Source: Bugula neritina
Lineage: Eukaryota > Animalia > Bryozoa
Length of the DNA stretch: 64,000 nt
Reading direction: 5' to 3'
Assembly (NCBI GenBank): GCA_964035545.1
Contig: OZ037765.1
Coordinates: 21,699,504-21,763,503, forward strand
Shown here: piece after piece, positions 20,026-42,897 of the stretch
How positions within the stretch are numbered: position 1 is the stretch's first letter
How the letters are laid out: each line of letters opens with the position of its first letter
Translations under genes and position numbers: made by a program
Notes under the pieces: generated by a model
Told to the model about the DNA's origin: nothing
Databases searched by the model: none
What the model saw: only the letters and a program-made list of their open reading frames with translations

Positions 20026-21767
20026 CTAATACAGCACTATGTCAGCACACTGATAGAAGGCAGCAGGTGCTTCCTTGTTCTCCGTGACATAAGACACCTG
20101 CAAAAATAAAATAAAACTAGTGCATACATTGTGAATCAGCTTTAAGTGTTCAAGGTTAATAAATGGCATATAATTGTGATTTACACCACCAATGTTCATG
20201 GTGAACATGGTTGCTTAAACGATGTGTTGAGAATAACAAGAAGGCTTACCTGAATGATTCGGTTTGGGTGACCAGATAGCATTGGTAACTTGACATCTAC
20301 CGAGTACAGGTGCAAGCTTGGCTCTCCCATATCTGACACACGGGCTACTTCTTTGAAAGATGACGCCATATCATCTAAGCCAAAACTAACTGAAAAATAC
20401 CCCTGCAAATAAATTTGAAAATGTACATTTAAAATTTGTGTTATGAAAAAATGATTTGCACACATGACTTCTAGAGTTTAAAAGGCTTTAAAATTTTTGA
20501 CTGAAGTAGACTTGTTAGAAGCAACGGCAGAACTTGCTTTTTTCATTGAACGATTTGCCGTGAATATTTCAGATTTAAGTAAGTTGAAACCTAAAAGTAT
20601 CTAATTTACTATTTTAAAAATCACTAATAAATTTGCTACATTTCAGGGATTTTAGACCCGAGCCTCTACAAGCTCTGCTATTACTTATTTTAGGTGACCT
20701 CTTCTTTATTACCTACCTTCTTATTAAACTTAGGGGTGAAAGTTAACAACAAAAAACCAATATTGCTTTATATCTTATCTATGTCCATAATGACAGACTC
20801 CAAGAAATTGTATAAACTAAAGTAATATAGCAGACAAGAAAGAAAGTTTTGTTCTTTTTTTCAAAACAGTAATAGTTAGGATTATACTTGATATTGTGGG
20901 ACAATCTGTGTCAAGTGACAATCAATTTTCACTTACTGGACTATTGGCGCTGAAGTGATCCAAATTTTTCTGAAATATCACAGTGTAGTTACTTTCAGCT
21001 CTGAAGAAAAAAGTCTAAAGTAAGACTAAAAGTAAACTTAAAATGCTAAATGCATGCCAAAATTTAGGAAAAAAAATCAAGTGTCTTGTTAATGCTGGTA
21101 CAAGAAAAGATAATAAAATGCTTTATACTTACTTCAGTTTCAAAACACCAGATGTTTGAGGCGACCTTCCACCACAAGGTGAAGCCAATAGAATGCAATC
21201 ATCTGAAGCTACAAATAGTTTCAATTTCAAACTGCAACAGTGTTTACAGTATAAAAATAAGAAATAGTTCTATTGGCAGCTCTCAATCTTTATTAGAAAT
21301 ATCATTTAAACTTTATTTTTTTGCAATTTAGGTTTTTTATCACTGTAAATAAAATATGAAATTCTCAACTAAGTAATCCTAATAGCCGCAATTATAGCAA
21401 TTACCAAACTAAAAGTAAACTGTAAATTTGATAATAACCAAACACAATGACAATAGCAACGCAATGAATTGAATGGTTATATTTATGGTATTGCCCTATT
21501 GGCTATTGGTAATGCTAACCATACAACGATACATAAAATTAAAATGATCATTATCATTATGGAACAACCACTATGAGTATACCTAGCGCTTTTATTTAAT
21601 AGTGTGATAAATCTAATAACTATAAGTATTAGTATATATAAAAACTAACCAACTTTGTTTAGGCCAGACATTGATCCTCTTTGGTGGGGATTAATTAAAC
21701 ATAGATGACAAGAAACCGTCAAAGCACAAGAAAACAAAATCAAAATAGCATGCTGATAATGCATCAT
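20026..21767 (-). CDS. Secreted His-brace LPMO-like copper-binding protein, paralog A (160 aa)
   Basis: Exons 21650-21767, 21133-21208, 20937-21000, 20250-20402, 20026-20097. Product: MMHYQHAILILFSCALTVSC|HLCLINPHQRGSMSGLNKVASDDCILLASPCGGRSPQTSGVLKLKAESNYTVIFQKNLDHFSANSPGYFSVSFGLDDMASSFKEVARVSDMGEPSLHLYSVDVKLPMLSGHPNRIIQVSYVTENKEAPAAFYQCADIVLY*. The gene model is strong; the family call is by motif. Confidence 0.85.
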
Positions 21768-21945
21768 TTTTAACTTTTAGGATATTTTTAATTTTTGCAG
21801 ATTGACCAAGTTTATTAAAAGTTTTATTAAACCGGTTACCGACGACCAGTTTTTGAAATAATCGCAAAACTAAAGAAAGAACTGATTTTATAGCATGCGT
21901 TTGCAGTTGTGCAAAATGTGCAACTCAAAACAACAAGAGTTTGCG

Positions 21946-21962
21946 CACGTGATCATCACGTG
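21946..21962. promoter_or_regulatory. Tandem CACGTG E-boxes upstream of paralog A
   Basis: CACGTG at 21946-21951 and 21957-21962, ~180 bp upstream of the ATG. TATAAAA on the minus strand at ~21886-21892 lies between them and the ATG. Confidence 0.4.
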
Positions 21963-23262
21963 GTATCGTTAAAAATAGCGTGTGGCAATAGATAACTCTC
22001 AATAATTTAATTACATGTCTAAATAATATATTGAAATAATATTATTATTCAGTTAGGTGTTTGAATGGAGATTTAAAAAAAAAATTCTTTTTATTAATTG
22101 TCAATTTGTTAAAAGTTCTCACATCTCTGCTAAACTATCTGTGTCGATGGTTGCTGTTGTGGAGAGAACTTGGAATAAAACTGTCATTCAGTGGCTCACT
22201 GGCCTTAAAATGTTGTGGCAAGTAGGATATTGTTAGAATTTAATGAGTATAAATTATAATATGTAGTAAGTAGTAACACTTTGAAAACTTGTTAAAAGAG
22301 TTATATGGTGACAAAGTAAGCTTTTGAAATGCTATGTGCAACTGTTGGAGCGTTGAGCTTTAAGGGTTAATATAATATATCCTCACTTTGAACATAATAT
22401 TAAGGCTCTGAGCCATTGCCCATTTTCAATATTGTTTTTCCAAAATTTATTACAAATAACTTTTGAAAATCTTATTAAAATGTCAACATGCATGCTTCTG
22501 CTTGAATACTTGTTTTTCTGAAGAAACTATATTTGTTTATAGAGAGCTTAGTTTTTACAGTAACAGCTAGACTGAATATTTTATATATGGTCAGAAATAG
22601 TGCTTTATTTGAAGAGAATATAACTCCTAATTTAAGATGTGGTCAGAAGACATGTGAAGGGGTCTATTATCAGCTTGTAGTTGTACCTACTATAAACCAA
22701 TAAGTTTTATTCTTTTTAATTAAATTCACTACCTGCAAAAATGTAACATATATTTGTACTAGAAGAGTATTCAAATATTTTTAATAGCAAAGCCTGATAT
22801 GTTGATCTAAAATTAATCATAGTACTTGTACCAATTTTACATAATTGGTACAACCTGCATGTTTATTCCCATTATGTACAATTTGCTTGTTATTTGTCAT
22901 ACCTGACACCAAAACATTTACAGCTGTCTCAATTAAGCTCTTGCAATTTCTTGTTTGTATTTTATATATGAAGTCTGGCCCCTTATATTACAATGAATAT
23001 ATGTGTTTAATCTGAATACAAACCATTAATAGTCTTGTAAACAAACGAGAACATTCTTTCTCGATTAGATAATAGCTGTGTTCCAAGACAACAATGCTTT
23101 AAGAAATATAAACCAAATGAATAAGCTAAATTACAATAATTATAGGCACTAAGTTTTATTACTTATAATGGCATGTATAACAAAATGCTGCAAATGTCAT
23201 TGTCTGCAGGTGAAAGAAGCTGATATATCAAGTTTTACTTTGTTCCAACCACTTTGAAGATG

Positions 23263-25314
23263 TTATATCACTGTGATATCAGCACACTGGTAGTAAACCA
23301 CTCCCGGGCTGGTAACATACGTAACCTGTAACATAATATAGTTTGCATGATTGTATTTTGGTGAATTGAAAAGGAAAAGTACATCACATAAAAGTCTATT
23401 GAATAATAATTAATTTTATTCTTCTTTGTTGTTAATTGCTATGCAAGGATTTAAAATGTGCAAATTGTCCTTTGGTTCATTAGTATATAATATGTAGGCC
23501 TATTACATTTTTTTAATAGTAATAGTTATTGTGATGAAAGAAGCTACAATACAATACAATGCAATACAATATAATACAATACAATGCAATACAATATAAT
23601 ACAATACAATACAATACAATACAATACAATACAAAACAATACAATTCTATGCAATTGTACCTAAAATACTCTCTAAACTAAAATTACAGCCATGTGCTAT
23701 AGTATGTAGTGGTTCTAGAAATTACAAATGCACATGAGAAAAGAATATTTTTATTGCACGGCTTGGCTCCAGCTTAAGGTATATCTTTCAAGAAACATAC
23801 AGTGTACCAGCAGCAATTCACACTAACAAGTAGGCAGGTATAATCAATAGCTCCCAACTCAAAACATAATACAATATAAAAATGAAATTGAACAACAGAA
23901 GAAACAAATACAAATTTCTATTCTGAATTTTGAGCCAAATTTCTTTTATTTAGAAAGTTTAGCCACCAACCTGAAATATATGATGACCAAGTGTTGAAGG
24001 CACTACAACATCATGTATGAAATACAAATACAAGTCCTTCGTTTCAGAGTCTTCAAACGTTACCAGCTCTGTAAACGAATTCTCATCAGCACCAACACTG
24101 ATGGTGAAGTTGCCCTAAAAATAATTTTATTAAAAATCTTGCAGTATGTAAATGGAGTTGTAGTTATGCATTTTAACCATATATAGTTTAATCTTTTGCT
24201 ACTGGATGAGTAATGTAACATCTTTAGGTGCTTTGAGATTCAAAAGTTTTTATTAGAATTGGATTATGTTTCAATAGATTTGTAGAACTCTTACTTGCTG
24301 CTTTTTACACAAATATTATGACATTGCACCTGTGGATGCAAAATTCTGGACTACATAGACATAGTTATATATATTATTGAAACAGAGGGTATGGAATTGT
24401 CCCCTCTCTGACAGGAAGTTGCATCCCCCTTATGATGTACATTATATGTCTACCAACACACAAGGATAGAAACATTAGCTGTTACATACAGTGCTAAAAG
24501 GCAGCATTCCCATCATCGTATACTTACAGGAAGTGCTGGATCAAAGTATCCAATGTTTTTCTGAAACACCACAGTCAGATTGCTGTCAGCTCTAAATAAG
24601 AAAATACGAAAATTCACAGATTTTAATATAACTACATTGATTTGTGCTTTAATATTAAACTTTGGGTGAAAAAATGATTTAAGTCTGTTAATTGTCTTTT
24701 CTTGTGAATTGACTTACTTGAGCGATAGTATAGACTGCTCCCTAGGCCTGCCTCCGCAAGGAGGGGCTGTCAAGTTACAATCTAAATCCTCTGCTCCTGC
24801 AAACATGTAAATAAAATACAGAACTTTCAAAAGGTCAAAGGTTAATCACATTAGCTACTTAAAGTCAAATTATAACAACATTTTAAATGAAACAGTGTAT
24901 CAGGAGTCATGAAAAAGTATTTTTAGTTGATTTGAATATACAATGATATAAGAACCAGTAAAAAATTATTCTATTCTATATGCAAGTTGTGAATTCTAAT
25001 GCTTTTCCCATGTCATTGAACATTGATGTTAAGCATCCATAACAAATTTTAGTTTTTTTATTTAATAAATGTGTGAAACTACATCCAACAGCTGGTACAT
25101 AGTTGAAATAGGTGCAATCATAAAATATTTTATAGTAAATCTTAAAATCAACACAGTTATGGATCTTTTGTAGTTAATATTTTCTAACAAAGAGTGAGTA
25201 GCTCTTACCTGGTACATTTAGGCCACCCAGAGGTCCTCGCTGATGAGGGTTAATCAAGCAGAGGTGGCTAGAAACTATAACAGCACAAGAAAGTAAAATT
25301 ATGTAATTAAACAT
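23263..25314 (-). CDS. Secreted LPMO-like protein, paralog B (151 aa; second His replaced by Tyr)
   Basis: Exons 25209-25314, 24718-24796, 24528-24591, 23971-24114, 23263-23325. Product: MFNYIILLSCAVIVSS|HLCLINPHQRGPLGGLNVPGAEDLDCNLTAPPCGGRPREQSILSLKADSNLTVVFQKNIGYFDPALPGNFTISVGADENSFTELVTFEDSETKDLYLYFIHDVVVPSTLGHHIFQVTYVTSPGVVYYQCADITVI*. Confidence 0.85.
23545..23646. repeat. (TACAA)n pentanucleotide microsatellite
   Basis: Direct reading; in the last intron of paralog B. Confidence 0.9.
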
Positions 25315-25806
25315 TGCTACATATATTGTATATGTAGAACTGCAACCCAAGACGATTCCTGTGCTAGCTATATTCATGGAATGACATAAATAAAGGAAAT
25401 TATACTGCTGGTATTTTGCATGACCAACCTGATACTGGTTGATATTAAAATAACTATGTGTCCCATTTTTTGTTAACCCTTACACGGAAACAGTGTCTTT
25501 ATATGCAACAGTTGTCAAAGGGCAAACAATTACTGAACTCTAGCAAGCATTAAAAAAATGACGGTAAAATAATCTTAGCTTGAGCTTGGAAACATTGCAA
25601 AAGGTACTATTTTTAATCATTACGGTCACTATATATTTTGACAACTGTTTGTGAACCAAAATTGCAAAGATTATTATCAAATAATAATTTACTTTTCTCA
25701 AATTGACTTATATAACAGCTATATAAATAGTGCCTTAGATTTTTCAAAATATTATAATTTAGTGTTTAGACTATGTTTAAGGAAAAGTGCTAATTATGCG
25801 ATGCGT

Positions 25807-25890
25807 ATATTATATATTCTATATTATATATTATATATTATATATTATATATTATATATTATATATTATATATTATATATTGTATATTAT
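25807..25890. repeat. AT-rich (ATATATT)n-type simple repeat
   Basis: Direct reading; explains the spurious Y/I-rich ORFs. Confidence 0.85.
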
Positions 25891-26966
25891 AGTTCTACAA
25901 AAAATATACATGAAACCATTTCTGTTTTATTTGACTTTATTTTTAAAAGTTGGGCTGCAACACATTTTGTTAATTAACATCAGAATTATTAGCTGTAATC
26001 TGTACACTAGCTGTGCTCAATAATTTTGATTAATTATAAGTAAACTTCTTCTTATACTCAGTGTTATTGCTATAAACTTGACAATTCAACTAAAATCACT
26101 ACACACCTTTTGCCATGATAGCACCACTTTACTCAACGTGCATCAAAGCAACATTTGGTTTCAATTACCTGTATTTATTCCAGCCATTAGTGACAACTTC
26201 AGTTCTGCCAATTTTATAACCACAAAGACAGGCAGCATATTCACCCATAGGCTACATAGAAAGCAACAACTTGGTAACTAAAACATAGTCTATGGCAAAA
26301 GTATTCACAATAAGTTAGATGCAAGTGGTTTTTGAAGTTACAAGACAAACAAAGTTTTAATTTTTGTTAGCTTCCAGTCTCACTTGAAACAGCAATCACA
26401 TATAAGCATAGCAGACAAACTGAAAACAATAAATAATTGCAAACAGTATTAATATTAGATAGGAAGCAGAGTGTTACACCAGTACTCATGCAATGCACTA
26501 CTTTATAATTGTTAATTTGGCAGCAAAGTATATATTTGCTATTGCTGATATTTAGTATTGCATTTGTCATAACCATTTTTGCAGCATTTTTCTGTTTCTA
26601 TTAACTGAATCTGTTTGTTCACTTTAGACTAAATAGAACAAACACACAAAACAAACACAAGCAGTAACATACAACAGTGTTGTCCATTTATGCATAGTAT
26701 AGCTATCAAATTACACAAGTGGTTTTTGCAACATACTCGTGTACATTCGCATTATACATATATCTTTGAAGAAAGGATTTTTCAATCAAGAGTTTAATTA
26801 AATATGTTCTTTTTTCTTTGATAGATTTCTAACATGATTGCGCTACTAATCCTTCCTTAAAGTATCTTTTGAGTCTTGTATTATAAATTGGTAAGCAAAA
26901 TTTTAGCTAATGACGTCTTTTACAAATAGTTATGATAAATTATAAGGTTGTTTATTTGGCAGCTAA

Positions 26967-27178
26967 GGGAGCAGCCGTGGTCTAGGGGTTAGAGCGTTTG
27001 CTTAGTAAGCACGAAGGTCATGGGTTCGAGCCCAGACAAAGGCCATTGGTGATGTTAGGAAGAGCATCCAGTCATAATTGCTCCTGTGCTTCATTTAAAT
27101 AAGTCCTTAGCCCGCTTTAACAAAAACCCCTTCCATCAGGGGTTTTCTCACAGGGATAGCGACTATAAAATTGCGTGA
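26967..27178 (+). mobile_element. tRNA-derived SINE with 17-bp target-site duplication
   Basis: Pol III A-box-like TGGTCTAGGGG and B box GGTTCGAGCC. Perfect direct repeat GTTTATTTGGCAGCTAA at 26950-26966 and 27179-27195. 3' hairpin AAAACCCCT-TCCATC-AGGGGTTTT. Confidence 0.85.
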
Positions 27179-27743
27179 GTTTATTTGGCAGCTAACCCTT
27201 AACCACATTGGTGATTATTATAAAAATATTGCATACTAATAGTAACAATGAACTGGTAATAATAACGTAAAATGGCTTTTTGGAGGTTCAAGCACTGAAA
27301 ATTTGTACTTTTGTATTTCGTAAAAAATTACATTATATTAATCTGCTAGTCATTTGCCTAGTATCACTAAACAGTATTTTAGTGATAGTATTATGCCCAT
27401 TTGAAAATTGCTCATAATATTATATAAATTGTATTCAATTTTTAGTATATTGAGTTTTGTATTGAGCTGCATTAAAGAATATATAATAATATGTATTAGA
27501 AATCGATCATCATATTTTCTTGTACTTTATTTGTAAAGCAAATAAAAAATGATGCACATCATAATATGTAGAACAAAAGCTTCTATTAGATTTTTAGTGT
27601 CTTAAGAACATAAAACACGCATGAAAATTTTTGTTATTGAAATAAAAGTGTGATGGTCTAAATAAAAAGTCGACACTTATTCATTAGCTATGTGTTATAA
27701 TTATTAAATAGTATTCTACTCTGTGTACAATCCATCCACTCGA

Positions 27744-29249
27744 TTAGGGGTCATTGATTAGAATATCTCCACATTGGTAGTAAGTGCCCAGAGGCACAGG
27801 TATTGATGGGTTGTTTGTAACATATTTCACCTGTAAAATATATACATGTATTTAAAACAGCAGCTGTTTCAGGGTTGTAAATATAATATGTTGTGCATAA
27901 AACTTAAATTTTATTCGTTCATTATGTTTTAGCCATTTCTAAAAAAATGCTTTTAAATTTCATTTAGCTTTTAGTTTTCTCTTGTTTTATGTAAAGTAAA
28001 CTTGTTCATATAATATTATTGGTTAGAGAATTCTTCCTAATAGTCAGAATGTATTTTGTTGAATTAAATAGACTGGGTTAAGTTTATGCAGTAGTTCTGA
28101 TAAATTCAACAATCATTAGCTAAAGTTATGATTATAGGTGGGCAAAAGAAACTTTTGTAAGCCTGTTTTTATAGCCCTACATTTCCAAATGTTCATTATG
28201 TACCAGCAACTACTTTCTAAAGAAAAAGGCTGTTCCTTGCACTTGATAAAAGCTATATTCAGAACATTCCTATGTCTTCAAAGGAGCAAAACTGCTGGTA
28301 TACCTGAGTCAGCTTTGTAGCTTAAGCTGTATGCTTATTGCATTGAACATGATTTGATTTTTTTCAGCAATTTTTAAGGGTGGTGGTGGAAATTTAATTC
28401 CATGTTCTTGGCTTAAACAATGATTTAAAATAGTAAAGAATACTCATAGTATGGTTACCTGGATAACGTGTGTCAAAGAAGCACCCTCTAGTGGTACCAA
28501 GATTGGCACTTGAAAGATGGTGAAGTTTGGTGCACCTCGATCAGGGATACGGGCAGCTTCCACTAGAGAATTCATATCATCTCCAATACTGACCGCAAAG
28601 TATCCCTGAAAAAGTCAGATATATATATGAAGAATATCCATTATATTCTAATAAATTACCAAAGAATATAACTTAATAAAAATTCTATCAAAGACTTACA
28701 GGACAGAATACTTTTACAAAAGAATTTTGGTAACTTACTGGACTCTTTGGGTCTAAATGATTCACATTTTGCTGGAAGGTGACAGTGTAGTTAGTTCCAG
28801 ATCTAAATAACGAACAAAACAAATCAGTTTAATAGCAAAGCAATTATAATATAGGCATAGTAAATAAGTTTGAAATTCTAATATTGTCTTATCTCTGCAA
28901 TACTTGAAATACGTAAATACCTACATTAGTTTTAAGCTGGGTGGATCATCTGCTGGTCGCCCACCACATGGTCCAGTCCTAAGCATACAATCTTTTGCAC
29001 CTATAAATTTCAACAAATTGATTTAAAATTTTACAAAAGCGTATACAATTTGCTTCTTTAATAAAGAATGAACCGAAATGAGAGTACATTTTTTCTCAAG
29101 ATGTCTAACTATTTTCCAAAAAAGTATTCATTTTTAAATTTACCAAATTTGTTAATTCCTTCCATAGAGCCTCTCTGGTGAGGGTTGAGAAGGCAGATGT
29201 GACTGGAAACAGCTGCCACACAGGCAAGTAGAAGTGTCTGTCGCAGCAT
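27744..29249 (-). CDS. Secreted His-brace LPMO-like protein, paralog C (159 aa)
   Basis: Exons 29144-29249, 28925-29000, 28739-28802, 28459-28605, 27744-27830. Product: MLRQTLLLACVAAVSS|HICLLNPHQRGSMEGINKFGAKDCMLRTGPCGGRPADDPPSLKLISGTNYTVTFQQNVNHLDPKSPGYFAVSIGDDMNSLVEAARIPDRGAPNFTIFQVPILVPLEGASLTHVIQVKYVTNNPSIPVPLGTYYQCGDILINDP*. Confidence 0.85.
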
Positions 29250-29351
29250 GTTGAATGTCTTGCACCTCTGTCAGCAGACGCCCCTATACTGTAAGTAAAG
29301 CTTCACTTGTATAGAATAATATAACTGCACATGCCCAGTTAACATCTCTGA

Positions 29352-29359
29352 TCACGTGA
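29352..29359. promoter_or_regulatory. TCACGTGA (CLEAR/USF-type E-box) upstream of paralog C
   Basis: ATCACGTGAC ~100 bp upstream of the ATG at 29249. Confidence 0.35.
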
Positions 29360-30679
29360 CAACTCAGTGTTCCAGTGAATGACCTCTGCAGCAAGAATAA
29401 TGTTTACTGAGTAGACTACTAGCATAATGTGCTTAAATTACACTGAATTGTTTTGTAATATAGGTACTTCTTTAAACTTTAATTATAATGCTTTGAAATA
29501 CTGTGATATATCAAACTTTATTATGTCTAATACTAGTGCACATAATTATTTACTCTAGCTATAACATCAGCAGCATATATTGACATATTAATTCTAATGC
29601 TCTTTAATATGCTTTACCAAATTTTATTTTTAAATTTTTTTTTAAATAGATATGTTTTTTAACAGAGTTGACTGTATAAAGGCTTTCTGCTCATGACGCC
29701 AAATGGTCTCACCTTAAGTTGAGGACTTGATTTAATCTCACAAAATAAATGTAATAAATACTCGACAGTAAATTATATATTATCTGTTATATATTTTAAG
29801 ACTGGTCTATATATAGCTGGCTATTAGCATAAAAATGTACATGTGCCTATACATGTTACAAATTTACATGCACAGATGTACAAATGTATCTTAAACTTAG
29901 AACTGCTTACTGCAAGTAACTTGTCTTTAAAGCAGCGTTAAAGTACATTCGGCTTAAAAATTACAAATTCCTGTCGGTAAAAATAATCCAAATATAGACT
30001 TGTTTAAAGAAGAGACTGGGAGTCATATGTTATTCATGTAGTATGACTTCAAAGGCTGCTGGTACTTTTAGAGAACATTCCCTGCTGGTACATTAGAATA
30101 ACTCTAGTCATAGATACAATAAAGAACTAAATGTTTCTTAAGATTCAACCAGCAGAAAAGAAAGTAGAAGTCATGAGTTTATTTTAGAACATAGAGAATC
30201 AGGTGTTCACTTGTCGTCTGCATGTAAAGATTGGCCAATCAAACAGTAGGCAGTTAAAGTTGTTTTTCAAGTCATTACCACAAAGGCTTTTCTAAAGGCT
30301 CTGCTACCAACATAGGAGAAATTTTATTTAACTAAAAATTATTTAAGGGATAAAAAGTTGGAAAATAAATGCATGAGACTGACGCAGTGTTAGCACATAC
30401 AAAGAGTTTCAATTCCTTAAACATTACTTAATTAAAATAAATCAATGAGTTGAGCACATCTCCAACATAGTGTAAATGATGTTTAAGATGCTCAAATAGA
30501 AGATCTCAAGTTTATCTTTTTAAGATATATGTTATATAAAACACCGATGTATCTTGAATTCTGCATATGCCATGTGTATAAATAACTAAATTAATATTAA
30601 ATTGAAACCAATATTTTTTTTATCAGTTGTAATTTATTTCTAGTATATGCCACAATTAGCTTGCTAATGAAAATCAAAG

Positions 30680-33600
30680 GGGTCATTCCGTGTCAACTCA
30701 ACCAATGGCCCACGCCTTTGCGTCTCAGATTTTGTTCATATTTACACCAAATGAACCTACACATGTCTTGAGTGCTATTCTTAAATATTTCTGGCCTGAC
30801 ACAAAAACTTTTTGAGAAATGAATATTTCCACGAACAAAGGTTGGGAAAACTTTTGAGGAAAATTTGCGATTTTTACTTTTAGACCAATTTGTAAACGTC
30901 CATATCTCCATTATTTTTCTAGACTGAGACTTAAAATTTGGTGTGTGATTTGATAACACCTATAAATTTGCACTAGTAGTAACACACACTGCAGAATACT
31001 TTGTGTGCATATATGCTAAGCCATTGAATATTGGCAATTTTTTATGAATTTTGAAAAATTTCGAATATTTGCCACATCACAAAAGGCATTAATTTTTATT
31101 TTACTTTCATAAATTTTTATCCATAAATAGTTGATTATGGTTACTTTATACTCCTTAATTTGTGTAATTTTGAAAATAATATTTTCCGAGATATAGACAC
31201 CCAAAGTGAAGAAAATGTGAAAATTCGCCCAACTTCACAAGGATGTAACCCGATGTTTGAATACAGTAAAATCCTTCAAACAAGTATTTTCTGTAACGTC
31301 ATTTAGTGTATTTTGTAGATTCATAAATTTGGACTTCCTTATATTGTCCAAACTTGAAGTAAGTCGCACGGAAAAATGGTATGCGTACGAAAATCGGCAA
31401 AATGCAATTTTTCAATATAATATGTTGGGATCATACATTTTTATTATTCATATTGTTCAAAATATCAAGTAGATACATATATGTTTCCTATATATGTCAA
31501 ATCTACTGAAGATTACGATAAAATCTGATTTGTGTGTAATATCGTAAGAAAATTCTGCCGATCGGCATTGTATGATATTCTCATTAGGTTTCAGATAGCA
31601 ATTGTTATTTCTGTGAGTGAATGGTGTAAAACAGCTGAAATCTTGCTGGAATCAAGTACATTAAGTAGCTGAGGCAAGAGTAGCTTCAAAAAACATACCC
31701 AAATATAGCACCATGGCCCTGAACACAATAGGCCTAATTTATTCGATGACAGTGGTGTTTAATACATGCCGGAAATAATTGTGGCTTTTGAAACAGATGT
31801 GCCTAAATACAGCAAAATGGCCCTAACCTCGCCTTAATTTGGTCAGTACTGGTTAAAAAATCAAGTAATTGGCGTCATGCCATGTCCAATATGTTCATCA
31901 TCCTGAAAAAATTTACAACTCTCTTTTTCAAAACTGGAAGCAATGGTCTTCCAACTTTAGTATCTGGTTCAGACAGAACTCCTTTTGCAGTCTTCTGGTT
32001 TGCTGTGCAAGGTAATTGTTGGGTTTTTACATAAGCTGGAAAAGCTTTTTCCTAATACATGTCATCTCAGCTTGTTATGCTTTTCCATTTTCATTATAGC
32101 TAATACACAAAAGCGAACTAAGCGACTATAAAGACCCAGCAGTTTTTCTCTTATCCAGACTTGCATTTCACACTTGTACTGGCAACTTGTAACTCATGAG
32201 ATAACCTTTTTTTACGTTGCTATTTCTTCAGTCTGTTACTATAATAAATATTTATTTCTCTAACTTAAAACACAACGATAATTGTTTACTCCAAATTTTA
32301 TAGAGGTCTTATTAATGGTCCACCTTTCTGGTGCCAATGTCAATAACTGGACCTTCTTTTGTCCCAAAGAAACTTTCACCTTATTCAAGGAACATATTAA
32401 TATGTTCAAATCTTTATGATTAATAGGCTTTATACAGGCATTTGTTGATTCTGGGTGGAGTTCTTCTCCCTCTATACTTGCAACTGTGGACACCTTCTTA
32501 GCAATGACCTCCTCCACTTGATTCTGTTTTTTTCCCATAGTTCAATTTACTGGAAGGGCTAATTTTTAGGGCTCTCCTAGTATAATTCTACTCCTTTGAA
32601 CTGTAGAAACTGAGAGAAACTGTGCAATATTAATTGCTTTAAAAAAAGATGAGCTCTCAGAATACTCTCAGGAAACTAAAAGTGATGCATTTCTTGAAGT
32701 TGAGAAGGAGGTACAGACACTAAACACTGGAATGACAGAATTGGGAGCTTCTTCCTTGAAAGTTGCAAAAATTAGCTCATCCAGTAAAGTGAGCTATAGG
32801 AAAAGAAAACGAAATAAAGTGCAGGAGGTTATTACTGAAAAGGTAGAAACAGTCTTTGGCATAGATGAAGAAGAACTCCACCCAGAAGCAACAAATGTCT
32901 GTATGAAGCGTAGTATTCATAAAGATTTGAACAAATTGATGATCCTTGATCCTTGAATAAGGATGCGAAAGTTTTCTTGTGACTAGAGAGGGTCCAGTTA
33001 TTGACATTAGCACGAAAAGCTGGACCACCGATAGAACAGCCATAGAATCTGGAGCAAACAATTACCTGGCCCAGCAAGCCAGAAAACTGCAAAGGGAATT
33101 CTGTTTGAACCAGATGGTAAAGTTGGAAGACCATTCTCTCCACATTTAAAAGAAAAAGTTGTAGATTTTTTTAGGATGATGAATTATTCTTAGCCTGGGC
33201 AAATTACTAACCTGATGAGGGTGCGGACCAATCTGCTATATTTAGGCACATCTGTTTCAAAAGCCACAATTATTTCCGGCATGTACTAAACACCACTGTC
33301 ATCGAATAAATTAGGCCTATTGTGTTTAGGGCCATGGTGCTATATTTGGGTATGTTTTTTGAAGCTACTCTTGCCTCAGCTACTTAATGTACTTGATTCC
33401 AGCAAGATTTCAGCTGTTTCACACCATTCACTCACAGAAATAACAATTGCTATCTGAAACCTAATGAGAATATCATACAATGCCGATCGGCAGAATTTTC
33501 TTACGATATTACACACAAATCAGATTTTATCGTAATCTTCAGTAGATTTGACATATATAGAAAACATATATGTATCTACTTGATATTTTGAACAATATGA

Positions 33601-34377
33601 ATAATAAAAATGTATGATCCCAACATATTATATTGAAAAATTGCATTTTGCCGATTTTCGTACGCATACCATTTTTCCGTGCGACTTACTTCAAGTTTGG
33701 ACAATATAAGGAAGTCCAAATTTATGAATCTACAAAATACACTAAATGACGTTACAGAAAATACTTGTTTGAAGGATTTTACTGTATTCAAACATCGGGT
33801 TACATCCTTGTGAAGTTGGGCGAATTTTCACATTTTCTTCACTTTGGGTGTCTATATCTCGGAAAATATTATTTTCAAAATTACACAAATTAAGGAGTAT
33901 AAAGTAACCATAATCAACTATTTATGGATAAAAATTTATGGAAGTAAAATAAAAATTAATGCCTTTTGTGATGTGGCAAATATTCGAAATTTTACAAAAT
34001 TCATAAAAAATTGCCAATATTCAATGGCTTAGCATATATGCACACAAAGTATTCTGTAGTATGTGTTACTACTAGTGCAAATTTATAGGTGTTATCAAAT
34101 CACACACCAAATTTTAAGTCTCAGTCTAGAAAAATAATGGAGATATGGACGTTTACAAATTGGTCTAAAAGTAAAAATCGCAAATTTTCCTCAAAAGTTT
34201 TCCCAACCTTTGTTCGTGGAAATATTCATTTCTCAAAAAGTTTTTGTGTCAGGCCAGAAATATTTAAGAATAGCACCTAAGACATGTGTAGGTCCATTTG
34301 GTGTAAATATGAACAAAATCTGAGACGCAAAGGCGTGGGACTTTCTGAAATTTGGTTGATTTGACACGGAATGACCC
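30680..34377. mobile_element. Non-autonomous Sola2-like DNA transposon with ~1.14-kb terminal inverted repeats
   Basis: Termini GGGTCATTCCGTGTCAA...TTGACACGGAATGACCC; 4-bp TSD AAAG (30676-30679 and 34378-34381). Near-identical TIRs ~30680-31820 and ~33228-34377, mirrored in the ORF track. Internal decayed transposase fragments (KVQLLTLAPERWTI; EPD..VGRPL..V.FF.DDE). GRG termini, 4-bp TSD and long TIRs are Sola2 traits. Confidence 0.8.
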
Positions 34378-34441
34378 AAAGGCCTGTGGTTGTTGTGTTC
34401 TATTAATGCACCCTGTAAGCCTATACTGTGTATACCTACTC

Positions 34442-34633
<192 letters not shown>

Positions 34634-35691
34634 ATTTGAAATCTCTTTAAATGCAAACAGCGTTGTTGTGTTGATGGTATAATTGAAAGCATATACTCCA
34701 TGTTCTCCTTATATCTTATAAGCTAATGAAATATTATCATTAAACTATAAAATGAGATGATGCTGGAATTAGTAATACAATAACTTTTTTTGCTTCTAGC
34801 GTCTTTTATTTATTTATATGGCTATATGCAAATAATTTGATAAGAATCTAGCACATTATTAGGAGCAAAAGTTCTAAACATGTATAATCATACCTAGTTT
34901 ATACATTTATTGATTGGCTAAAATTCATATTTATTCAATGTTATTTTATGTTAGGCGCTCAATATATTTACTTATTACAATAAGACCTGCAGCATTTTGC
35001 TACTTTTATATGTCCCACAAAGTTTCTTCAGATTGTTTGAGTTTCCATCTCAAAAGCAATTAACAATTGAGTTACATACATTGACGCATTTAATTGTTCT
35101 TGAAACCTAATTAATATAATAATTAATAATAAATTGTGAATAAGAATATTTTTATAAATGAGATATATATATAGTGCCGGTGAGAAGAATGTAGTATTTA
35201 TTCAGGCAGTTGTTCAATGGCTTCTATCAATTAAGGTACTAACTGTCTATCTTGCACAAAATATTGAAACTTATATTTTATCATTTCTACAACCTATTAA
35301 TATATTAATTTTAAATGGTTTCTGATGTGTTTCCACATTAATTCCTAATTTTGTAACTACATGTGATGCTACAAGCATCATGACCTATATTACCTATCGA
35401 GTTAATTTATTTTACATCTTGCAAATATTTCATTCAACATCTGCTATTCTAGTAAGAATTGTTGCTTTTGCACTATAACCTCTTTTTCTGTACTAACTAT
35501 TATGCATGTCAGTTTTAAATGTCATTATTCTGTTGATTTATGGCTAAATGTGCATTTTAGTTAACCTTGGGAAGTTACATGTGCTGTTTAAATTAATATC
35601 TGCCAATTTAAATATTAGAATTATGAAAGTAGGTTTAGTTTTGAGTAGCTTTTATATGGCATAAATCTGTTTAGTAGTTGGTATTGGAGTA

Positions 35692-35775
35692 GTGGTGTTG
35701 GGTGTAGTGGTTAGCATGCTGGCTTAAGCAAGCCAGGGGTCAATGGTTCAAGTCCCAATGGAGGCAGAAGCTTTT
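35692..35775 (+). mobile_element. Degenerate tRNA-like SINE head
   Basis: GGTGTAGTGGTTAGCATGCTGGCTTAAGCAAGCCAGGGGTCAATGGTTCAAGTCCC contains A/B-box-like motifs and an anticodon-like stem, but the acceptor stem does not pair. Confidence 0.5.
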
Positions 35776-35998
35776 ACAAGTGTGAATATAGTTTATTAAA
35801 TATGTGGTGTACATCACATCTATTTATAGAATTCTAGTAAATCACTGCACATTGTTGTCAGTGTTATTTATAATAAAGTTTAATAAAAAGCAGATGAAAT
35901 TATTTTGTTATAATAATAAAAGTTGTCCAATGCAATAATCTAAAAATCTTTATATTATTTGTATTTCATATATATGAAGAGATTGGGAAAGCTCATAG

Positions 35999-37913
35999 TT
36001 ACTCTTGATCTATGTCTATATCAGCACACTGGTAGTAGTTGAATCCTAGATTAGTTATATAAGCAACCTGTGAAATAAAATAAAACAGCATAAGTCATAG
36101 AAAGTGTTAATGCAGTTCTTTTAAAAACGTATAACATTAAATATTATTGAAAAAAAAAATCTCATTTCTCAACCCAACCATAATTATACTAAGATGTGTG
36201 CTATGTTCCTAACATATTTTCAAAAGATTTTATCAGAGCGGTTGAATATTCTATGAGGCCAAACAACTTAGATGGGGAACATTTTGCATTTGAAAAAATT
36301 GTAATATATGTTACTGACAACATTCAAATTGTATCGTGTACATGTGTATCTTTAGGTTTCAGGTCATAAAACGGTATAACTGTACGTGTTTTGTAGAAAC
36401 AGTGTTGACTCAGAGTTATGGCTGCTTAATGACAAAAATGCAGGTAGTGTACGCTTAACCTGCTGGCAGATAAGTTGAGCAAAGTTCTTTTTCATCTCCA
36501 AGCTATGGGGCTTTAATATTGTATGAATAGAAATAAGTCGAAATATTAAGTGCTTTGTTTTAACTTATTTGGTAAGCATTTTAATACTGCTAAACATTTT
36601 TAAGCATTAGATGAGCTGAGACTTTTCTCATGTTTTTATTACTTTTTATTATTTTGGCGTAATGGTCTGCGGTTCAAATTCCAGTTGGGGCAAAAATATT
36701 TTACCGAATTATTCCAAAGTACATCATATTATATTATTATATTATATTATTATTATATAAACTATGCCAACTTAAATTACTACTCTTTAAACTATAGTTA
36801 GTTTGAAGTTTCTTGAAAGTTGATAATTATGTAGAAAGTTTTGCCAATAAATTTACTTTACAAAACTCAACCTAAAGGCTATGAAGTTGAATATTAATAT
36901 ACTTTAACCATAAAGTTTACCTGAACCACGTGTCGAGGAGTAAGACCAGGGGCTGGTATAGTAACATCTGCCAATATCAGCTCCATATCAGGTTTTCCAG
37001 TGTCAGGAATACGCAAGACCTCTTCCAGGTCAGCATCCGTCAAACCAAAGGCGACTGAGAAATACCCCTAAAAATTTGGTTAAATCTGAATAATTGGAAA
37101 AATATATAATGTGTACATGGTAATATAATTTATATGTGTACTTATATATATATATATATAATACGCCATTATGTTATGCTATATTATAATATAATACAAT
37201 ATATAAATTATACATTATATTATATAGTAAATATGTACTTACTGGGTTTAAGGGGTTCAAAAAGTTTTTGTTTTGTCGGAAGATTACTGTGAAATTTGCT
37301 CCATTTCTAAAAAAGATACAAAATATTGCATTTTTAAACAATAGGTAACTCAAGCTGTATTTTTTATATACTTATGATAAGTTCTAAACTTTGATTTCTA
37401 TAAGCTATCCAGGACAGCGTAGTTTTATTTTTCTAGTGCAAGAAATACTTTTCAACATACAGTGTTGTGACTTGAGGTGTTTCTGTTAGTCGTCCACCAC
37501 ATGGTGCTGTTTGTAGCATACAATCAGGAGAATCTACAAATATCAAAATATAATCGCATTTAGCTGCAGTTATTATTTTTTCATGAAATTATATAGATAA
37601 AAAAAGAACTTTCTTTCAGTTGAAAATTAAGATATTTATTCTCACAACTTGTTTTCTATCACATAGATCATGCTGTTTTCTAAGAATTACCAAAAAGATT
37701 ACTAAAAAGAAACTAAGTTTTTACAATAGTAGTATATAATTGAAAAATTTACACTTTACCAACAAATTTTTTTACTAGATCTATAACAGACTGATAATTC
37801 TTACCTTTGAAATTAATGCCTCGAATGGATCCCCCTCTGGGATGTGGTGTAATCAAGCAGATGTGAGAAAACACACTCACCACACAAGACAGTAAGGCAA
37901 TGTATCGCAGCAT
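35999..37913 (-). CDS. Secreted LPMO-like protein, paralog D (153 aa; second His replaced by Phe)
   Basis: Exons 37805-37913, 37461-37533, 37243-37306, 36921-37067, 35999-36067. Product: MLRYIALLSCVVSVFS|HICLITPHPRGGSIRGINFKDSPDCMLQTAPCGGRLTETPQVTTLNGANFTVIFRQNKNFLNPLNPGYFSVAFGLTDADLEEVLRIPDTGKPDMELILADVTIPAPGLTPRHVVQVAYITNLGFNYYQCADIDIDQE*. Confidence 0.85.
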
Positions 37914-38371
37914 TGTAGCTCTCAGATATGGCACACAACTAGAGACAAGGAGCTGGGACTGGTGGATACTGACTGTAATGTCTAAGCTAGACATTAGTTT
38001 ACATTCTCTCAACTCCACAGACATGCTTTCTTATTCGCCTGATTTGCTCTTTGACCTACATTTAAGGACCTATAGTAACATGGCATAGCAGTAGATGGAG
38101 ACCATCTTTTGAACACTATAAGCTTTATGCGTAAATTGCAAGATTTGCTGCCCACTTCGGCTTTGGTTATTTGGCATTGAGTCTAGCCAATGAAATTATG
38201 GTCATGTTCAAATATATAAAAGCATTATTTAAACTAGTTACATAGAAAGAAAATTCAAGATATTTGTAAATTGTTTTTAAGGATCTTTTTTCACTAATTG
38301 TTACATAAATCACATGTACCTCACTTGAGAATTTTTTATTTACAAACATTTTCTTTTGAAAAGTTTTGTTG

Positions 38372-38686
38372 CATTACAATTATGTTACAATTACATTACA
38401 ATTACATTCCAATTACATTACAATTACAAATTACAATTACTTTACAATTACAAATTACAATTACATTCCAATTACATTACAATTACAAATTACAATTACA
38501 TTCCAATTACATTACAATTACAAATTACAATTACTTTACAATTACATTACAATTACATTACAATTACAAATTACAATTACTTTACAATTACTTTACAATT
38601 ACAAAATACAATTACATTCCAATTACATTACAATTACAAATTACAATTACTTTACAATTACATTACAATTACATAACAATTACATA
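38372..38686. repeat. Compound (ATTAC/ATTACA/ATTACAA)n simple-sequence array
   Basis: Direct reading; explains three overlapping low-complexity ORFs. Confidence 0.95.
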
Positions 38687-38980
38687 ATGGTAGTTTGGTT
38701 ACTAAAACTACCTTATTGTAAGCATAGCTTAAATAATGTCCCACATAATTTTATGACAGCATTAGAATGTTAACAGCATAAACTTTTGCAAGTTTTGGAT
38801 TTATTTCTTTAAAATATTGATATTTACTTTAATAAATTTTTGTATGATTATTGTTCTAGTCGAAGTTTTTAGTAAGATTCTGCATTCTGCAATGAAAAAT
38901 ATTGATGCTACGAAAATGCTAATATTATGAATACCAGCATAGGTTATTATATTATACATCTAACTTGTTGCTTGTATAAA

Positions 38981-39122
38981 TGGTGTCCGGTAATAATGGC
39001 ACAAATGGAAAGTAGGTAAAAATGGCACATTTTCAATATTAGGGTTTGGGGTGGGGTTTGGAGTTTGGGAAAATTTAGCATCACTGTGCCATTATTGTCT
39101 GTGCCATTTTTACCTAAAATCT
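38981..39122. mobile_element. Short non-autonomous element with subterminal inverted repeats (MITE/Helentron-associated-like)
   Basis: Perfect 17-bp inverted pair TAGGTAAAAATGGCACA (39013-39029) / TGTGCCATTTTTACCTA (39100-39116), a second AATAATGGCACA/TGTGCCATTATT pair, and a G-rich TTAGGGTTTGGGGTGGGG core. Confidence 0.5.
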
Positions 39123-39822
39123 CTATAAATATATGCAAAACTATACATACAGCCTTTATATTAAAAGAAAAATTTATTTGTCTATTCTACAAATGTGTAA
39201 ATTTTTCTAATAGTTTTCGAACATGTTTATGCATAAGTTATCTTACTACATGAATATATAAGTATGCTGGTTATAAAAACTTGCAAATTAAGATTATAAA
39301 TACTATAGGCACCATTTAGAATTGTCACATCTGCGCATGCATCACTTTACTAATAGGAATGAAAAGTTGCCAACTTTTGTCCATGCAAGTATTTTATAGG
39401 TCTGTCCAAGTTGGACCATTTCTGTGTGAAACATAATCGTTTTCGGTTGACACCACATTTGAAACAGATAAAATTGTAAATGCAGTAATGTTTTGCAAGT
39501 TAATATAACATAACGCTTGATAAATTATCTCTGAAAGAATATTGCACTTTTTAATATTGGTTATTATCTTCAAACACTGAGTGTATGAATAAATCACATA
39601 CTGCATGCTTTATTACTAAAATAATAGATTATAATGTCTTATTTTTAGTTATTATTATGCTTTGTATTAAAAAATTAGACCACTTTTAGGCTTATAAGAA
39701 TTGTCTTATTATACAAATAAATGATATTCAAAGTTTGTTAAACATTTTCATTTATATTAAGCAGGTTGAAACAAAAAAGTAACTGCTAAGCATGCAGACA
39801 TTTATTTCAACAGCATAATTGT

Positions 39823-39891
39823 CAGATGTGAGTGGTGTGACACAGAAGTGAGTGATGTGACACAGATGTGAATAGTGTGGCACTTATGTGA
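39823..39891. repeat. ~20-bp tandem repeat (CAGATGTGAGTGGTGTGACA-like, ~3.5 copies) in the 3' UTR of paralog E
   Basis: Direct reading, just beyond the stop codon at 39905. Confidence 0.7.
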
Positions 39892-39904
39892 CCTTCAGTA
39901 GCTT

Positions 39905-42897
39905 CTAATAGATTATCACATCTGAACATTGGTAGTAGATGGCAACAGGTGGAGCCATGGAAGCATTGTTAGTCACATAAGCCACCTACAAATATTAAAC
40001 AGTGTATTACTTTATGTTTCACAATCGAAAATGCAAGCAACTATAAACTACTCCCACATGCTTGCAGATGGAGATGTGGCTTGAAAACTGTATAGCCATC
40101 GTTATATTAGTAAAATAAGTACAATTATCTTGTGGCTTTTAGAAAAATTTCTCCCGAAAATATGTCTTATATATATACATATAGTTAAAAATTGTTATTC
40201 GTGTGAAATGTGAGGCCTGTTGTTTGATCTTTTCTTTTAGGCTTGAATTATTAGTGCAGTAGACAAAAGCTTCCTCAACTCAGCTGGCTGATGGTAAAAA
40301 GCTTTTAATAACTATGACAGAATAATGTACTGCAAATGCTACTATAATAACGATGCAAAGATGAGATTTACAAAAAAATTAATGCGCATGTGAGGATAAA
40401 GGGAATTCATGTGACCTGTTATCATTTCTGATATACACATATCTATATTCCGTTTATTGATTTCAAAATGTCCTAGTGTTTTAGGGCATTTGAGTACAGT
40501 GAACACAACAAGATTTTTTAGTATACAAACTATTGGCGTGGATAGAACAATAAATAATTAGAAAGAGCATTTTTCATAAAATGACAAAAGTTATTATAAT
40601 GCAGCGCCCTTATGCTGTGCCACAAACTAGCACAGGAAATGCTTCTAGCATATTATAATGGGTGTAGAGCATGTCACAGGCTGACTAATAAAGACAGAAT
40701 AAAGCTGCTGTCTAGTGTAAATACAACCACGACTATCATAGTGAAAGTTATGTTGCTGGTACATCATCTAGTTTGACTTATTAGATATTCGTATTTAAGT
40801 TTACTGAACAGTTCTAAAAAGTGACCGCCAATAGTTGAGCATTCAAAGAAATACAACGAAGTTGTTGTTTATTGCTTATGGTAAACTTTTTCCTGGATAT
40901 AAAAGACCAACTCATGCAAAAAAGCTATAAGCAAAATTGTGTAGCCACATAATTAATTTACTGAAGTCATCAACAAATAAAAAAACATAAATCAAAGATT
41001 TGAAAATTTCTACTAGTTCTCATTTGTCAATAATGTTCCAACCTATTACATTTATATAAAGGCTTTATTTACAAGTATATGTCTGTAAGACAGCTTTTAT
41101 GTTTATGAAATTGTTTATAACTTTGTGCAGTATTAAAGTTTGTTTTGCATTTTTAACAGATTAAACCAAAGGGTTGAGAGATATATATGAATATGTTACT
41201 ATACCGTAAACATTGCATAACATTGCTTGAAAAATGTACGTAAAACCTTATGATAATTTAACATGCTTGGAAAATACTAGTAGCAGGTTTATATCTTGAA
41301 TAAATATATAAACACTAAATAAAAATAAGAATTAAACAATGTTATAAAGATAATTAAGAGAATATAAAAGACAGATTATTGTAAACTGTATGAAGCTTAC
41401 TGCTGATTGGTTAGTATGTTAGCTTGAACTCCAACTTTGCAATTTTTCAATTTGCAAAACTAAATTTCCTAAATCTAAGAAAACACTCTCTCTAAATCTT
41501 TTCACACAAGACTGTAATTGAATGGTTAAAGATACTGGTTTAGCCTGACACATATATTAAGCAAATAATAATCGTTCCTTGCCACATTGAAAATTCTCAG
41601 TTCATATTGTTAGTATAGTTTACATTAAATTATAGACCCCTTCTACCCCCACAATCACTCTTCTCATCATGATGGCAACTTAAACAAAGTGAGTTTTATT
41701 ATCATGCTTTTTAGTTTTACCTGCACGATTCTTTTTGAGTGATTCATGACAGGTGGAACTATTATATCTTCAGAAAACAAATGCAAGTTTTTCTCCCCTC
41801 TGTCCTTGACACGCGCTACTTCTACGAAAGATTGCTCATCCACTCCGAAACTAACTGTGAACCATCCCTAAGAAATGAAACTATTATACATGTAATGATG
41901 TAATGCCCGGTAATAACAGCAAATGTTCACACACCAAATATGATAACATTTCAGTATAATCGAAATAAAAATAACAATTGGATATATTTAGCACTTACTG
42001 GTGTTTTGTAATCAATGTGGTCCAAGTTCTTCTGAAATATGATTGTGTACACACTCCCAGCTCTAAATTACACATATAATAATAAAAAGAAGCAACCTTA
42101 AACACATTCTAATTAGCATCATATAACTTTGTTTAAAATATATGCACAAGTTTTTCTCAAATAAACAAAAAATTCAGACTGGTAATACGTACTGTAGATA
42201 GGTGGTGCTGTTCTCAGCTGGTTTTGCCCCACATGGTGGAATCACACGGTAACAGTCATGTGAACCTGCAAAAATCTAACACAAGTCAGTGATAAACAAA
42301 ACCCAGAAAACGTTCTTGACTCTTGGTACAAAGTTATGTGTATGTTTACCAATATATTGCTTTTATTTACAGTTTTTAAAATGAAGACAGCCATTTATAT
42401 AGATTGCAAAACTTATGTGTATTTAATTCATTAGATATTTTACTTTTAAGTTCACCTTTTGAAAGTGTTTTTACGTATAGATTTTGACTTTTTATTATAT
42501 GTATAATTTTATATAAGTTTTAAATTTGAAATCTGCAGTTGCTAATAAATGCAAAGCTTTGTATATATTACAAAAACTTATCTAACATTTTAAAAGATAT
42601 TTTAGTGATTAATGTGACAACTACTACTCTATGCTATATAGGATACACATTGATAGCTTATCAATATCAGAGGTCCTATATTGTGTTAACTTAATATATT
42701 TTTTGCGAAAATATTGAAAAAGTGAAATCAGTGTCACATTGTACAATTGAAATTCTTAAATAATTTATAGTTTTGCTTATGAACTTACGCAAGCCATTTA
42801 CAGTTGGTCCGAGTGAACTTCTCTGAGGAGGATTCAGCATACAAAGATGGCAGGAAACTGCAACTACACCGGCAAGTAATAAGATAAATCTTGACAT
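39905..42897 (-). CDS. Secreted His-brace LPMO-like protein, paralog E (157 aa)
   Basis: Exons 42789-42897, 42193-42265, 41999-42062, 41721-41867, 39905-39985. Product: MSRFILLLAGVVAVSC|HLCMLNPPQRSSLGPTVNGLRSHDCYRVIPPCGAKPAENSTTYLQAGSVYTIIFQKNLDHIDYKTPGWFTVSFGVDEQSFVEVARVKDRGEKNLHLFSEDIIVPPVMNHSKRIVQVAYVTNNASMAPPVAIYYQCSDVIIY*. Confidence 0.85.

Follow-up and report, generated by a model that had tools for sequence, protein, structure and literature searches.

A tandem array of five genes for small LPMO-fold proteins in the bryozoan Bugula neritina represents an old eukaryotic family of candidate copper proteins

Introduction

A 64,000-nucleotide stretch of the genome of the bryozoan Bugula neritina (assembly GCA_964035545.1, contig OZ037765.1, positions 21,699,504 to 21,763,503 of the forward strand; hereafter the window, in whose numbering positions are given) carries an array of five genes, g1 to g5. 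Here, we report that they are tandem paralogues within an old family of eukaryotic proteins that are soluble and secreted, measure about 15 kDa and have the predicted fold of lytic polysaccharide monooxygenases (LPMOs). The animal LPMO-type proteins named in reviews are AA15 (PMC10952591), and the present family would be a second LPMO-fold family in animals, present since before the placozoan-bilaterian split. We favour the reading that its members are copper redox proteins acting on glycans of ingested microbes, to which we give a probability of roughly 0.4, and the main rival is a role in carrying copper. The family is real and apparently unstudied, while its fold class is already known. A literature search by family names, accessions and taxa, with most subscription journals outside its coverage, returned no study of it. 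The original prediction that it is uncharacterised in animals thus stands in that no study was found, with the reservation that UniProt has automatically named some members 'BIM1-like domain-containing'.

The array and its gene models

Gene models built from the window place five intact genes on the minus strand at positions 20026-42897, each with five exons and GT..AG introns:

39905..42897, minus strand: g1, 157 aa; exons 42897-42789, 42265-42193, 42062-41999, 41867-41721, 39985-39905
35999..37913, minus strand: g2, 153 aa; exons 37913-37805, 37533-37461, 37306-37243, 37067-36921, 36067-35999
27744..29249, minus strand: g3, 159 aa; exons 29249-29144, 29000-28925, 28802-28739, 28605-28459, 27830-27744
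23263..25314, minus strand: g4, 151 aa; exons 25314-25209, 24796-24718, 24591-24528, 24114-23971, 23325-23263
20026..21767, minus strand: g5, 160 aa; exons 21767-21650, 21208-21133, 21000-20937, 20402-20250, 20097-20026

Intron phases 1-2-0-0, a third exon of 64 nt and a single terminal stop are common to all five. In a six-frame motif scan the N-terminal, PCG and terminal motifs each turned up five times, always on the minus strand and within 20 to 43 kb, and no sixth family copy was found within the window. The precursors are 151-160 aa long and the mature chains 135-143 aa, with four conserved cysteines (mature positions 3, 24-26, 31-33 and 129-135) and pairwise identities of 35-51%. The five-gene array is confirmed as real and not due to chance.

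RNA-read splice support covers the eight introns of g4 and g5. Those of g5 (441, 132, 534 and 152 nt) are skipped exactly in contigs of four RNA runs, and all four of g4 (412, 126, 413 and 645 nt) are skipped when the RNA contigs are taken together. Because the first ATG of g5 is polymorphic, the ATG at 21764 (giving 159 aa) is the safer start. An exon-1 profile search also recovered two B. neritina entries annotated as 'hypothetical protein' independently of our models: KAF6017736.1 is identical to the g1 model, and KAF6017738.1 equals g4 save for one residue. These two records served as queries in the whole-protein searches. The exon plan that had been proposed before any search was made is therefore upheld by the models and, for g4 and g5, by RNA, as are the four cysteines and the mature chain of about 140 aa; a proposed G.F.VS.G motif exists in a looser form than stated.

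Predicted fold and copper site

The AlphaFold2 model of g1 (predicted local distance difference test, pLDDT, 94.5; predicted template modelling score, pTM, 0.89) supports an LPMO-type beta-sandwich fold for the array proteins. In a VIA structure search its best match was the AA15 structure 5MSZ (Z 13.6), followed by LaX325 (11.8) and by AA13, AA10, AA11 and AA16 (about 11-11.5). The top 16 rows were all LPMO or LPMO-like, residue 1 of the model fell on the mature N-terminus of the match, and the first unrelated fold appeared at Z 9.3; Foldseek agreed. The model of g4 (pLDDT 95.7) likewise matched AA15 at Z 13.2, its fold being kept despite loss of the second brace histidine, His60. The LPMO-type fold that had been expected is thus borne out by these predictions, and Reeler and ML folds, the candidates for an unrelated structure, were not among the best structural matches.

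Histidine at mature position 1 requires cleavage directly before it. The leader of all five proteins is hydrophobic with Val at -3 and Ser or Cys at -1, and residue -1 is Ala, Ser, Gly or Cys in 63/63 homologues, which supports signal-peptide cleavage before His1 as had been suggested. An alignment of the family profile with AA10 5FTZ (E 4.7e-5) matched His60 with the second histidine and residue 132 with the Phe in the terminal A/G-F-Y motif, the axial residue in SmAA10A (PMC12067858). Conservation was scored in 69 eukaryotic rows, 61 of them from outside Bugula, all picked for His1 (two further matches are without it). Among the non-Bugula rows Lys56 is present in 59/61, His60 in 60/61, Phe132 in 59/61 and an aromatic residue 132 in 61/61, while residue 61 is Trp, Phe or Tyr in 97%. 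Over the eukaryotic rows the axial residue is Phe in 60/69 and Tyr in 9/69. The near-invariant Gln55-Lys56-Asn57 and the aromatic residue 61 adjoin His60.

From models and alignments we consider it very probable that g1, g3 and g5 bind a single copper through His1 and His60 with Phe or Tyr132 beneath it. The brace is complete in g1 (His1, His60, axial Tyr132) and in g3 (axial Tyr), and g5 is the copy nearest the family consensus (Lys56, Leu58, His60, aromatic 61 and axial Phe). His1 is present in g2 with Phe in place of the second histidine, and g4 has Tyr there, as does KAF6017738.1; judged by these residues, g2 and g4 cannot form a two-histidine brace. The second brace histidine of the original prediction accordingly holds for g1, g3 and g5 and fails for g2 and g4.

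No conserved Asp was found in the last loop, which is rich in Pro (an Asp two to four residues before the axial one is seen in at most 1/69 rows). In the alignment of the five proteins, g2 and g4 share a shorter version of this loop. The chains end 4-6 residues past the last motif (median 4), with no glycosylphosphatidylinositol (GPI)-like, hydrophobic or membrane tail.

Brace-less copies are maintained

A second, older assembly (GCA_010799875.2) allows the copies to be compared within the species. A 159-aa gene is called there at g3; no gene is called at g2, yet g2 is intact. The differences between assemblies are 7 synonymous to 0 non-synonymous for g1, 6 to 1 for g2 and 11 to 2 for g3, and for g4 there are 5 to 1 among the variants listed. 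For g2 and g4 combined the count is 11 to 2 (g4 again among the variants listed), with a binomial p of about 1e-5 on the rough assumption that 25% of sites are synonymous. The Phe of g2 and the Tyr of g4 at the second-histidine site also recur in the second assembly. Both genes are under purifying selection and not decaying; that they are pseudogenes or products of assembly error is ruled out by the second assembly, the RNA and the synonymous bias.

Such copies invite the explanation that the family consists of non-catalytic recognition proteins, lectin-like or opsonin-like, in which copper is structural or dispensable and expansion has diversified a binding surface. The intactness of g2 and g4 without His60 (in the second assembly or RNA contigs), their 11 to 2 bias among the variants listed and the variation of residues round the site among the Bugula copies all agree with this. 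The explanation suits g2 and g4 more than the remaining members. From amoebae to echinoderms, His1 and His60 hardly vary across the family; this near-invariance argues that the metal site is important to the family at large, for which we regard a recognition role as distinctly improbable.

Distribution, age and expansion of the family

Homologues (E about 1e-58 to 1e-26) were found in sponges, Trichoplax, bivalves, gastropods, a brachiopod, an annelid, echinoderms and a hemichordate, and among protists in several amoebozoans, a euglenid and a foraminiferan. Most of the named hosts live by filter feeding or grazing or are phagotrophic protists. Among the named matches of this word-limited search there was no cnidarian, chordate, ecdysozoan or fungus. 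In Trichoplax the gene carries all four of the Bugula introns, identical in position and phase, including the 73- and 64-nt exons, and one extra intron. This sharing indicates that the family was inherited from before the placozoan-bilaterian split, and it rules out recent horizontal transfer or contamination. A hidden Markov model (HMM) of the non-Bugula eukaryotic members scored the Bugula copies at 117-178 bits (g5 highest, 178) and the nearest bacterial relatives at no more than 68. In the ESM Atlas the family forms a 138-member eukaryotic cluster, 36% of which carries the PF20238 label. The Atlas also holds 546-aa mollusc proteins containing a related domain (TM 0.88), which suggests that multidomain family members were missed by length-limited searches.

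A second tandem array of three intact members with the exon plan of g1-g5 lies elsewhere in the B. neritina genome (G000:C7:4647000-4661300, L019-L021), and all three have His60 and Tyr132. Whole-genome profile searches found no family copies beyond these and the five of the array; since the count comes from such searches, eight Bugula copies is a lower bound. In a quick tree (140 columns) the eight group with a Watersipora protein at a support that is not strong (SH-aLRT 91). Expansion within bryozoans is likely but not proven by these sequences. Tyr132 is found in seven of the eight copies and Gln56 in five, aromatic 61 is lost in six and His60 in two (g2 and g4), and the full family pattern is kept by g5 only; residues surrounding the site differ among the copies. 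As far as its sequences tell, the family is ancient and widespread and not specific to Bugula. The idea of a lineage-expanded family hence survives for copy number, which looks bryozoan, and not for the family itself.

Function

A copper redox protein of the favoured kind, with glycans of microbes taken up as food for its substrate, would work as follows. Removal of the signal peptide would expose His1, and copper would be held with His60 above Phe or Tyr132 as in AA10 and AA15. The fourth copper position would stay open. Once reduced, the site could draw on H2O2 or O2 for the oxidation of a glycan bound to the adjacent conserved surface of Gln55-Lys56-Asn57 and aromatic 61. This glycan would likely be polysaccharide from the walls or coats of microbes or algae that have been eaten, and the reaction would take place in the gut or a digestive vacuole. 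Duplication in bryozoans may then have retuned this surface (axial Phe to Tyr, Lys56 to Gln, loss of aromatic 61) and also have given rise to g2 and g4, which without the full brace may be non-catalytic binders or one-histidine metal sites. A redox role is favoured because the LPMO primary sphere is complete with no fourth protein ligand evident, and because a conserved polar and aromatic patch adjoins His60 in proteins whose hosts are mostly microbe eaters.

Several observations weigh against this reading. In AA9, AA10 and AA11 more than 96% of proteins have a second-sphere Glu or Gln at one of two backbone sites (PMC10472438, Hall et al.). At the first of these, two residues before the axial aromatic, Glu occurs in 1/69 rows of the present family, and the conserved Gln9, Asn18, Gln55 and Asn57 are candidates only for the second. 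Two residues before His60 there is Leu where the aligned AA10s have a small Ala. No conserved aromatic was found in residues 2-53, nor any carbohydrate-binding module. The best Pfam match of the family is BIM1-like, and MtAA16A/AnAA16A and X325/Bim1 have the brace and the fold and do not cleave polysaccharide (PMC10088020 for MtAA16A). Finally, the taxon list is a sample and not a census. Because the usual catalytic Glu/Gln site is empty, oxidation of polysaccharide by the family is put forward only as a hypothesis.

Part of the same evidence suits the main rival, a copper carrier or buffer like fungal Bim1/X325 or bacterial CopC, in which the brace would take up Cu(II) with Asp24, Asp59 or Asp88 as fourth ligand and hand it to an importer or to secreted cuproenzymes. 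Among the aligned members, 59/70 match PF20238 at E<=0.001, several above its cut-off; LaX325 is the second-best structure and the nearest in size (Z 11.8); and the proteins are single small domains without Glu or Gln at the first second-sphere position. Such a carrier would, on the other hand, have kept the LPMO axial aromatic in 69/69 eukaryotic rows and would lack both a conserved Asp in its Pro-rich last loop and a GPI tail. Nor do the bacterial kin lie beside copper genes in the three contexts inspected, and carriage of copper by itself hardly accounts for copies that are conserved without a brace. We hold a carrier to be unlikely.

An AA16-like oxidase is a further candidate, in which small reductants would be oxidised and H2O2 released for microbial killing or for fuelling partner enzymes (the animal's own AA15-type gene product, peroxidases), with no glycan cleavage of its own. 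MtAA16A, which the g1 model matches at Z 11.1, has a typical brace and no flat aromatic surface and makes H2O2 (PMC10088020); residues 2-53 of the family include no conserved aromatic, and the B. neritina genome does contain an AA15-type gene. The near-invariance of Gln55-Lys56-Asn57 and of the aromatic 61 next to His60 hints that a specific ligand is bound, and we think an oxidase of this kind improbable.

Taken at its boldest, the view of the family as glycan-directed redox proteins would make its members unrecognised minimal active copper monooxygenases, common to phagotrophic protists and invertebrates and sister to the SCE4755 proteins of predatory bacteria. The family members would oxidise the wall glycans of microbes, and their second sphere would dispense with the usual Glu/Gln site. 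This we consider rather doubtful. If it were true, the genes of the Bugula array would form a natural series in which Phe-axial, Tyr-axial and brace-less variants all occur. The family mixes features, having the LPMO-type axial aromatic and lacking a Glu or Gln at the first second-sphere position, a GPI tail and, apparently, a Bim1-type Asp. Its nature as enzyme or carrier bears on what makes a histidine brace catalytic, and the eight Bugula copies are natural controls within one species.

Surroundings of the array

To the left of the array, exons of a BLTP3A/B bridge-like lipid transfer gene lie on the plus strand (about 2300-16850). A long interspersed nuclear element (LINE) lies inside a plus-strand gene, on the minus strand at 11716-15359; its ORF1 (236 aa) has a Baculo_FP-like domain and its ORF2 (956 aa) encodes an endonuclease/reverse transcriptase. 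To the right, a plus-strand alpha/beta hydrolase gene (Abhydrolase_3, 313 aa in the second assembly) begins at 44122, head to head with g1 at a distance of about 1.2 kb. An element of 3.7 kb lies between g2 and g3 (30680-34378). It has GGG...CCC at its ends, inverted repeats of about 1.3 kb and what looks like a target duplication of 4 bp (AAAG), and it contains no long open reading frame. Full-length copies number more than 20, at 91-97% identity, and the element is absent from the second assembly. Its many similar copies and this absence indicate a recent, polymorphic, non-autonomous DNA transposon, perhaps Sola-like.

Comparison with known systems

AA15 TdAA15A (5MSZ) is the best structural match (Z 13.6, root-mean-square deviation, rmsd, 2.9 Å, 129 residues aligned, 22% identity). 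Like AA15, the family is secreted, has His1 and a terminal F-x-x-C-x-D strand and is found in animals. AA15 proteins start with H-G, have a domain of about 190-200 aa, and carry Ala before the second histidine and Glu before the axial aromatic. The array proteins differ in length (about 140 against 195 residues), in their H-x-C start, in having Leu for that Ala and in lacking Glu two residues before the axial aromatic; PF03067 found no match in g1. Membership of AA15 is ruled out on these grounds of size, start, second-sphere motifs and the missing PF03067 match in g1, in keeping with what had been predicted. The AA15-type gene of B. neritina itself (G000:C4:2370700-2373000, plus strand) reads T-A-Y-H and Q-E-E-F, the usual second-sphere motifs with Ala and Glu, and has a C-terminal module rich in Cys; no homologue was found when one of its exons was used as query.

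X325/Bim1 proteins (PF20238, 6IBH) are alike in size and fold (Z 11.8, rmsd 2.6 Å, 116 aligned). Against the PF20238 gathering cut-off of 27 bits, g4 scores 23.6, homologues score 17.8-33.1 and g1 has no match, so that scores straddle the cut-off; even so, 59/70 aligned members match at E<=0.001. Unlike X325/Bim1, the family has no GPI-like tail and no conserved last-loop Asp, and it keeps the axial aromatic. The Asp ligand of X325 presumably lies in that last loop. In X325/Bim1 the fourth copper site is closed by an Asp on a Gly-rich loop (PMC7529816), and these proteins are listed as fungal (PMC10952591). Membership of X325 is doubtful.

The nearest sequence relatives are SCE4755 proteins (NF043005) of Bdellovibrionota, which pass the SCE4755 cut-off and have in common with the family its size and a layout of P..R, PCGG, strand-His-P-G and Y-x-C-A-D. 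HMM comparisons thus uphold the predicted kinship to BIM1-like and SCE4755 proteins. Against the NF043005 cut-off of 75 bits, g4 scores 14.7, eukaryotic homologues reach 32.4 and g1 has no match. The bacterial proteins have an invariant Glu four residues before the second histidine and an axial Tyr (58/58), where eukaryotic members have Lys (Lys or Gln in Bugula) and mostly Phe, together with an extra Cys3/Cys25 pair. Scores below 75 bits and Lys or Gln for the invariant Glu rule out membership of SCE4755. The bacterial proteins examined also have C-terminal tails, and their gene follows a putative lipoprotein gene: in L024:5480-6004, L027:5471-5995 and L030:920-1417 a gene for a Cys-rich protein of 165-174 aa, without NCBIfam match, stands directly before it. 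No copper-transport Pfam label was found in the three neighbourhoods. SCE4755 is known as 'monooxygenase-like' only, and no paper using that name was found.

Homology to AA10 (SliLPMO10E, 5FTZ; JdLPMO10A, 5AA7) is seen at the profile level (E 4.7e-5), with the second histidine and the axial Phe in register. JdLPMO10A has 142 residues, which indicates that an active LPMO can be as small as the array proteins. The family differs from AA10 in its Leu for Ala and in having no Glu assigned near the copper, and identity in structural alignments is 9-17%. Exon-by-exon Pfam and NCBIfam scans gave nothing significant (the best was BIM1-like on g5 exon 5, E 0.1), and phmmer of g1 against the PDB gave no match. 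The family misfits both standard LPMOs and Bim1/X325, and its PF20238 scores fall on either side of the cut-off; we file it as a family of its own within the LPMO-fold, histidine-brace superfamily.

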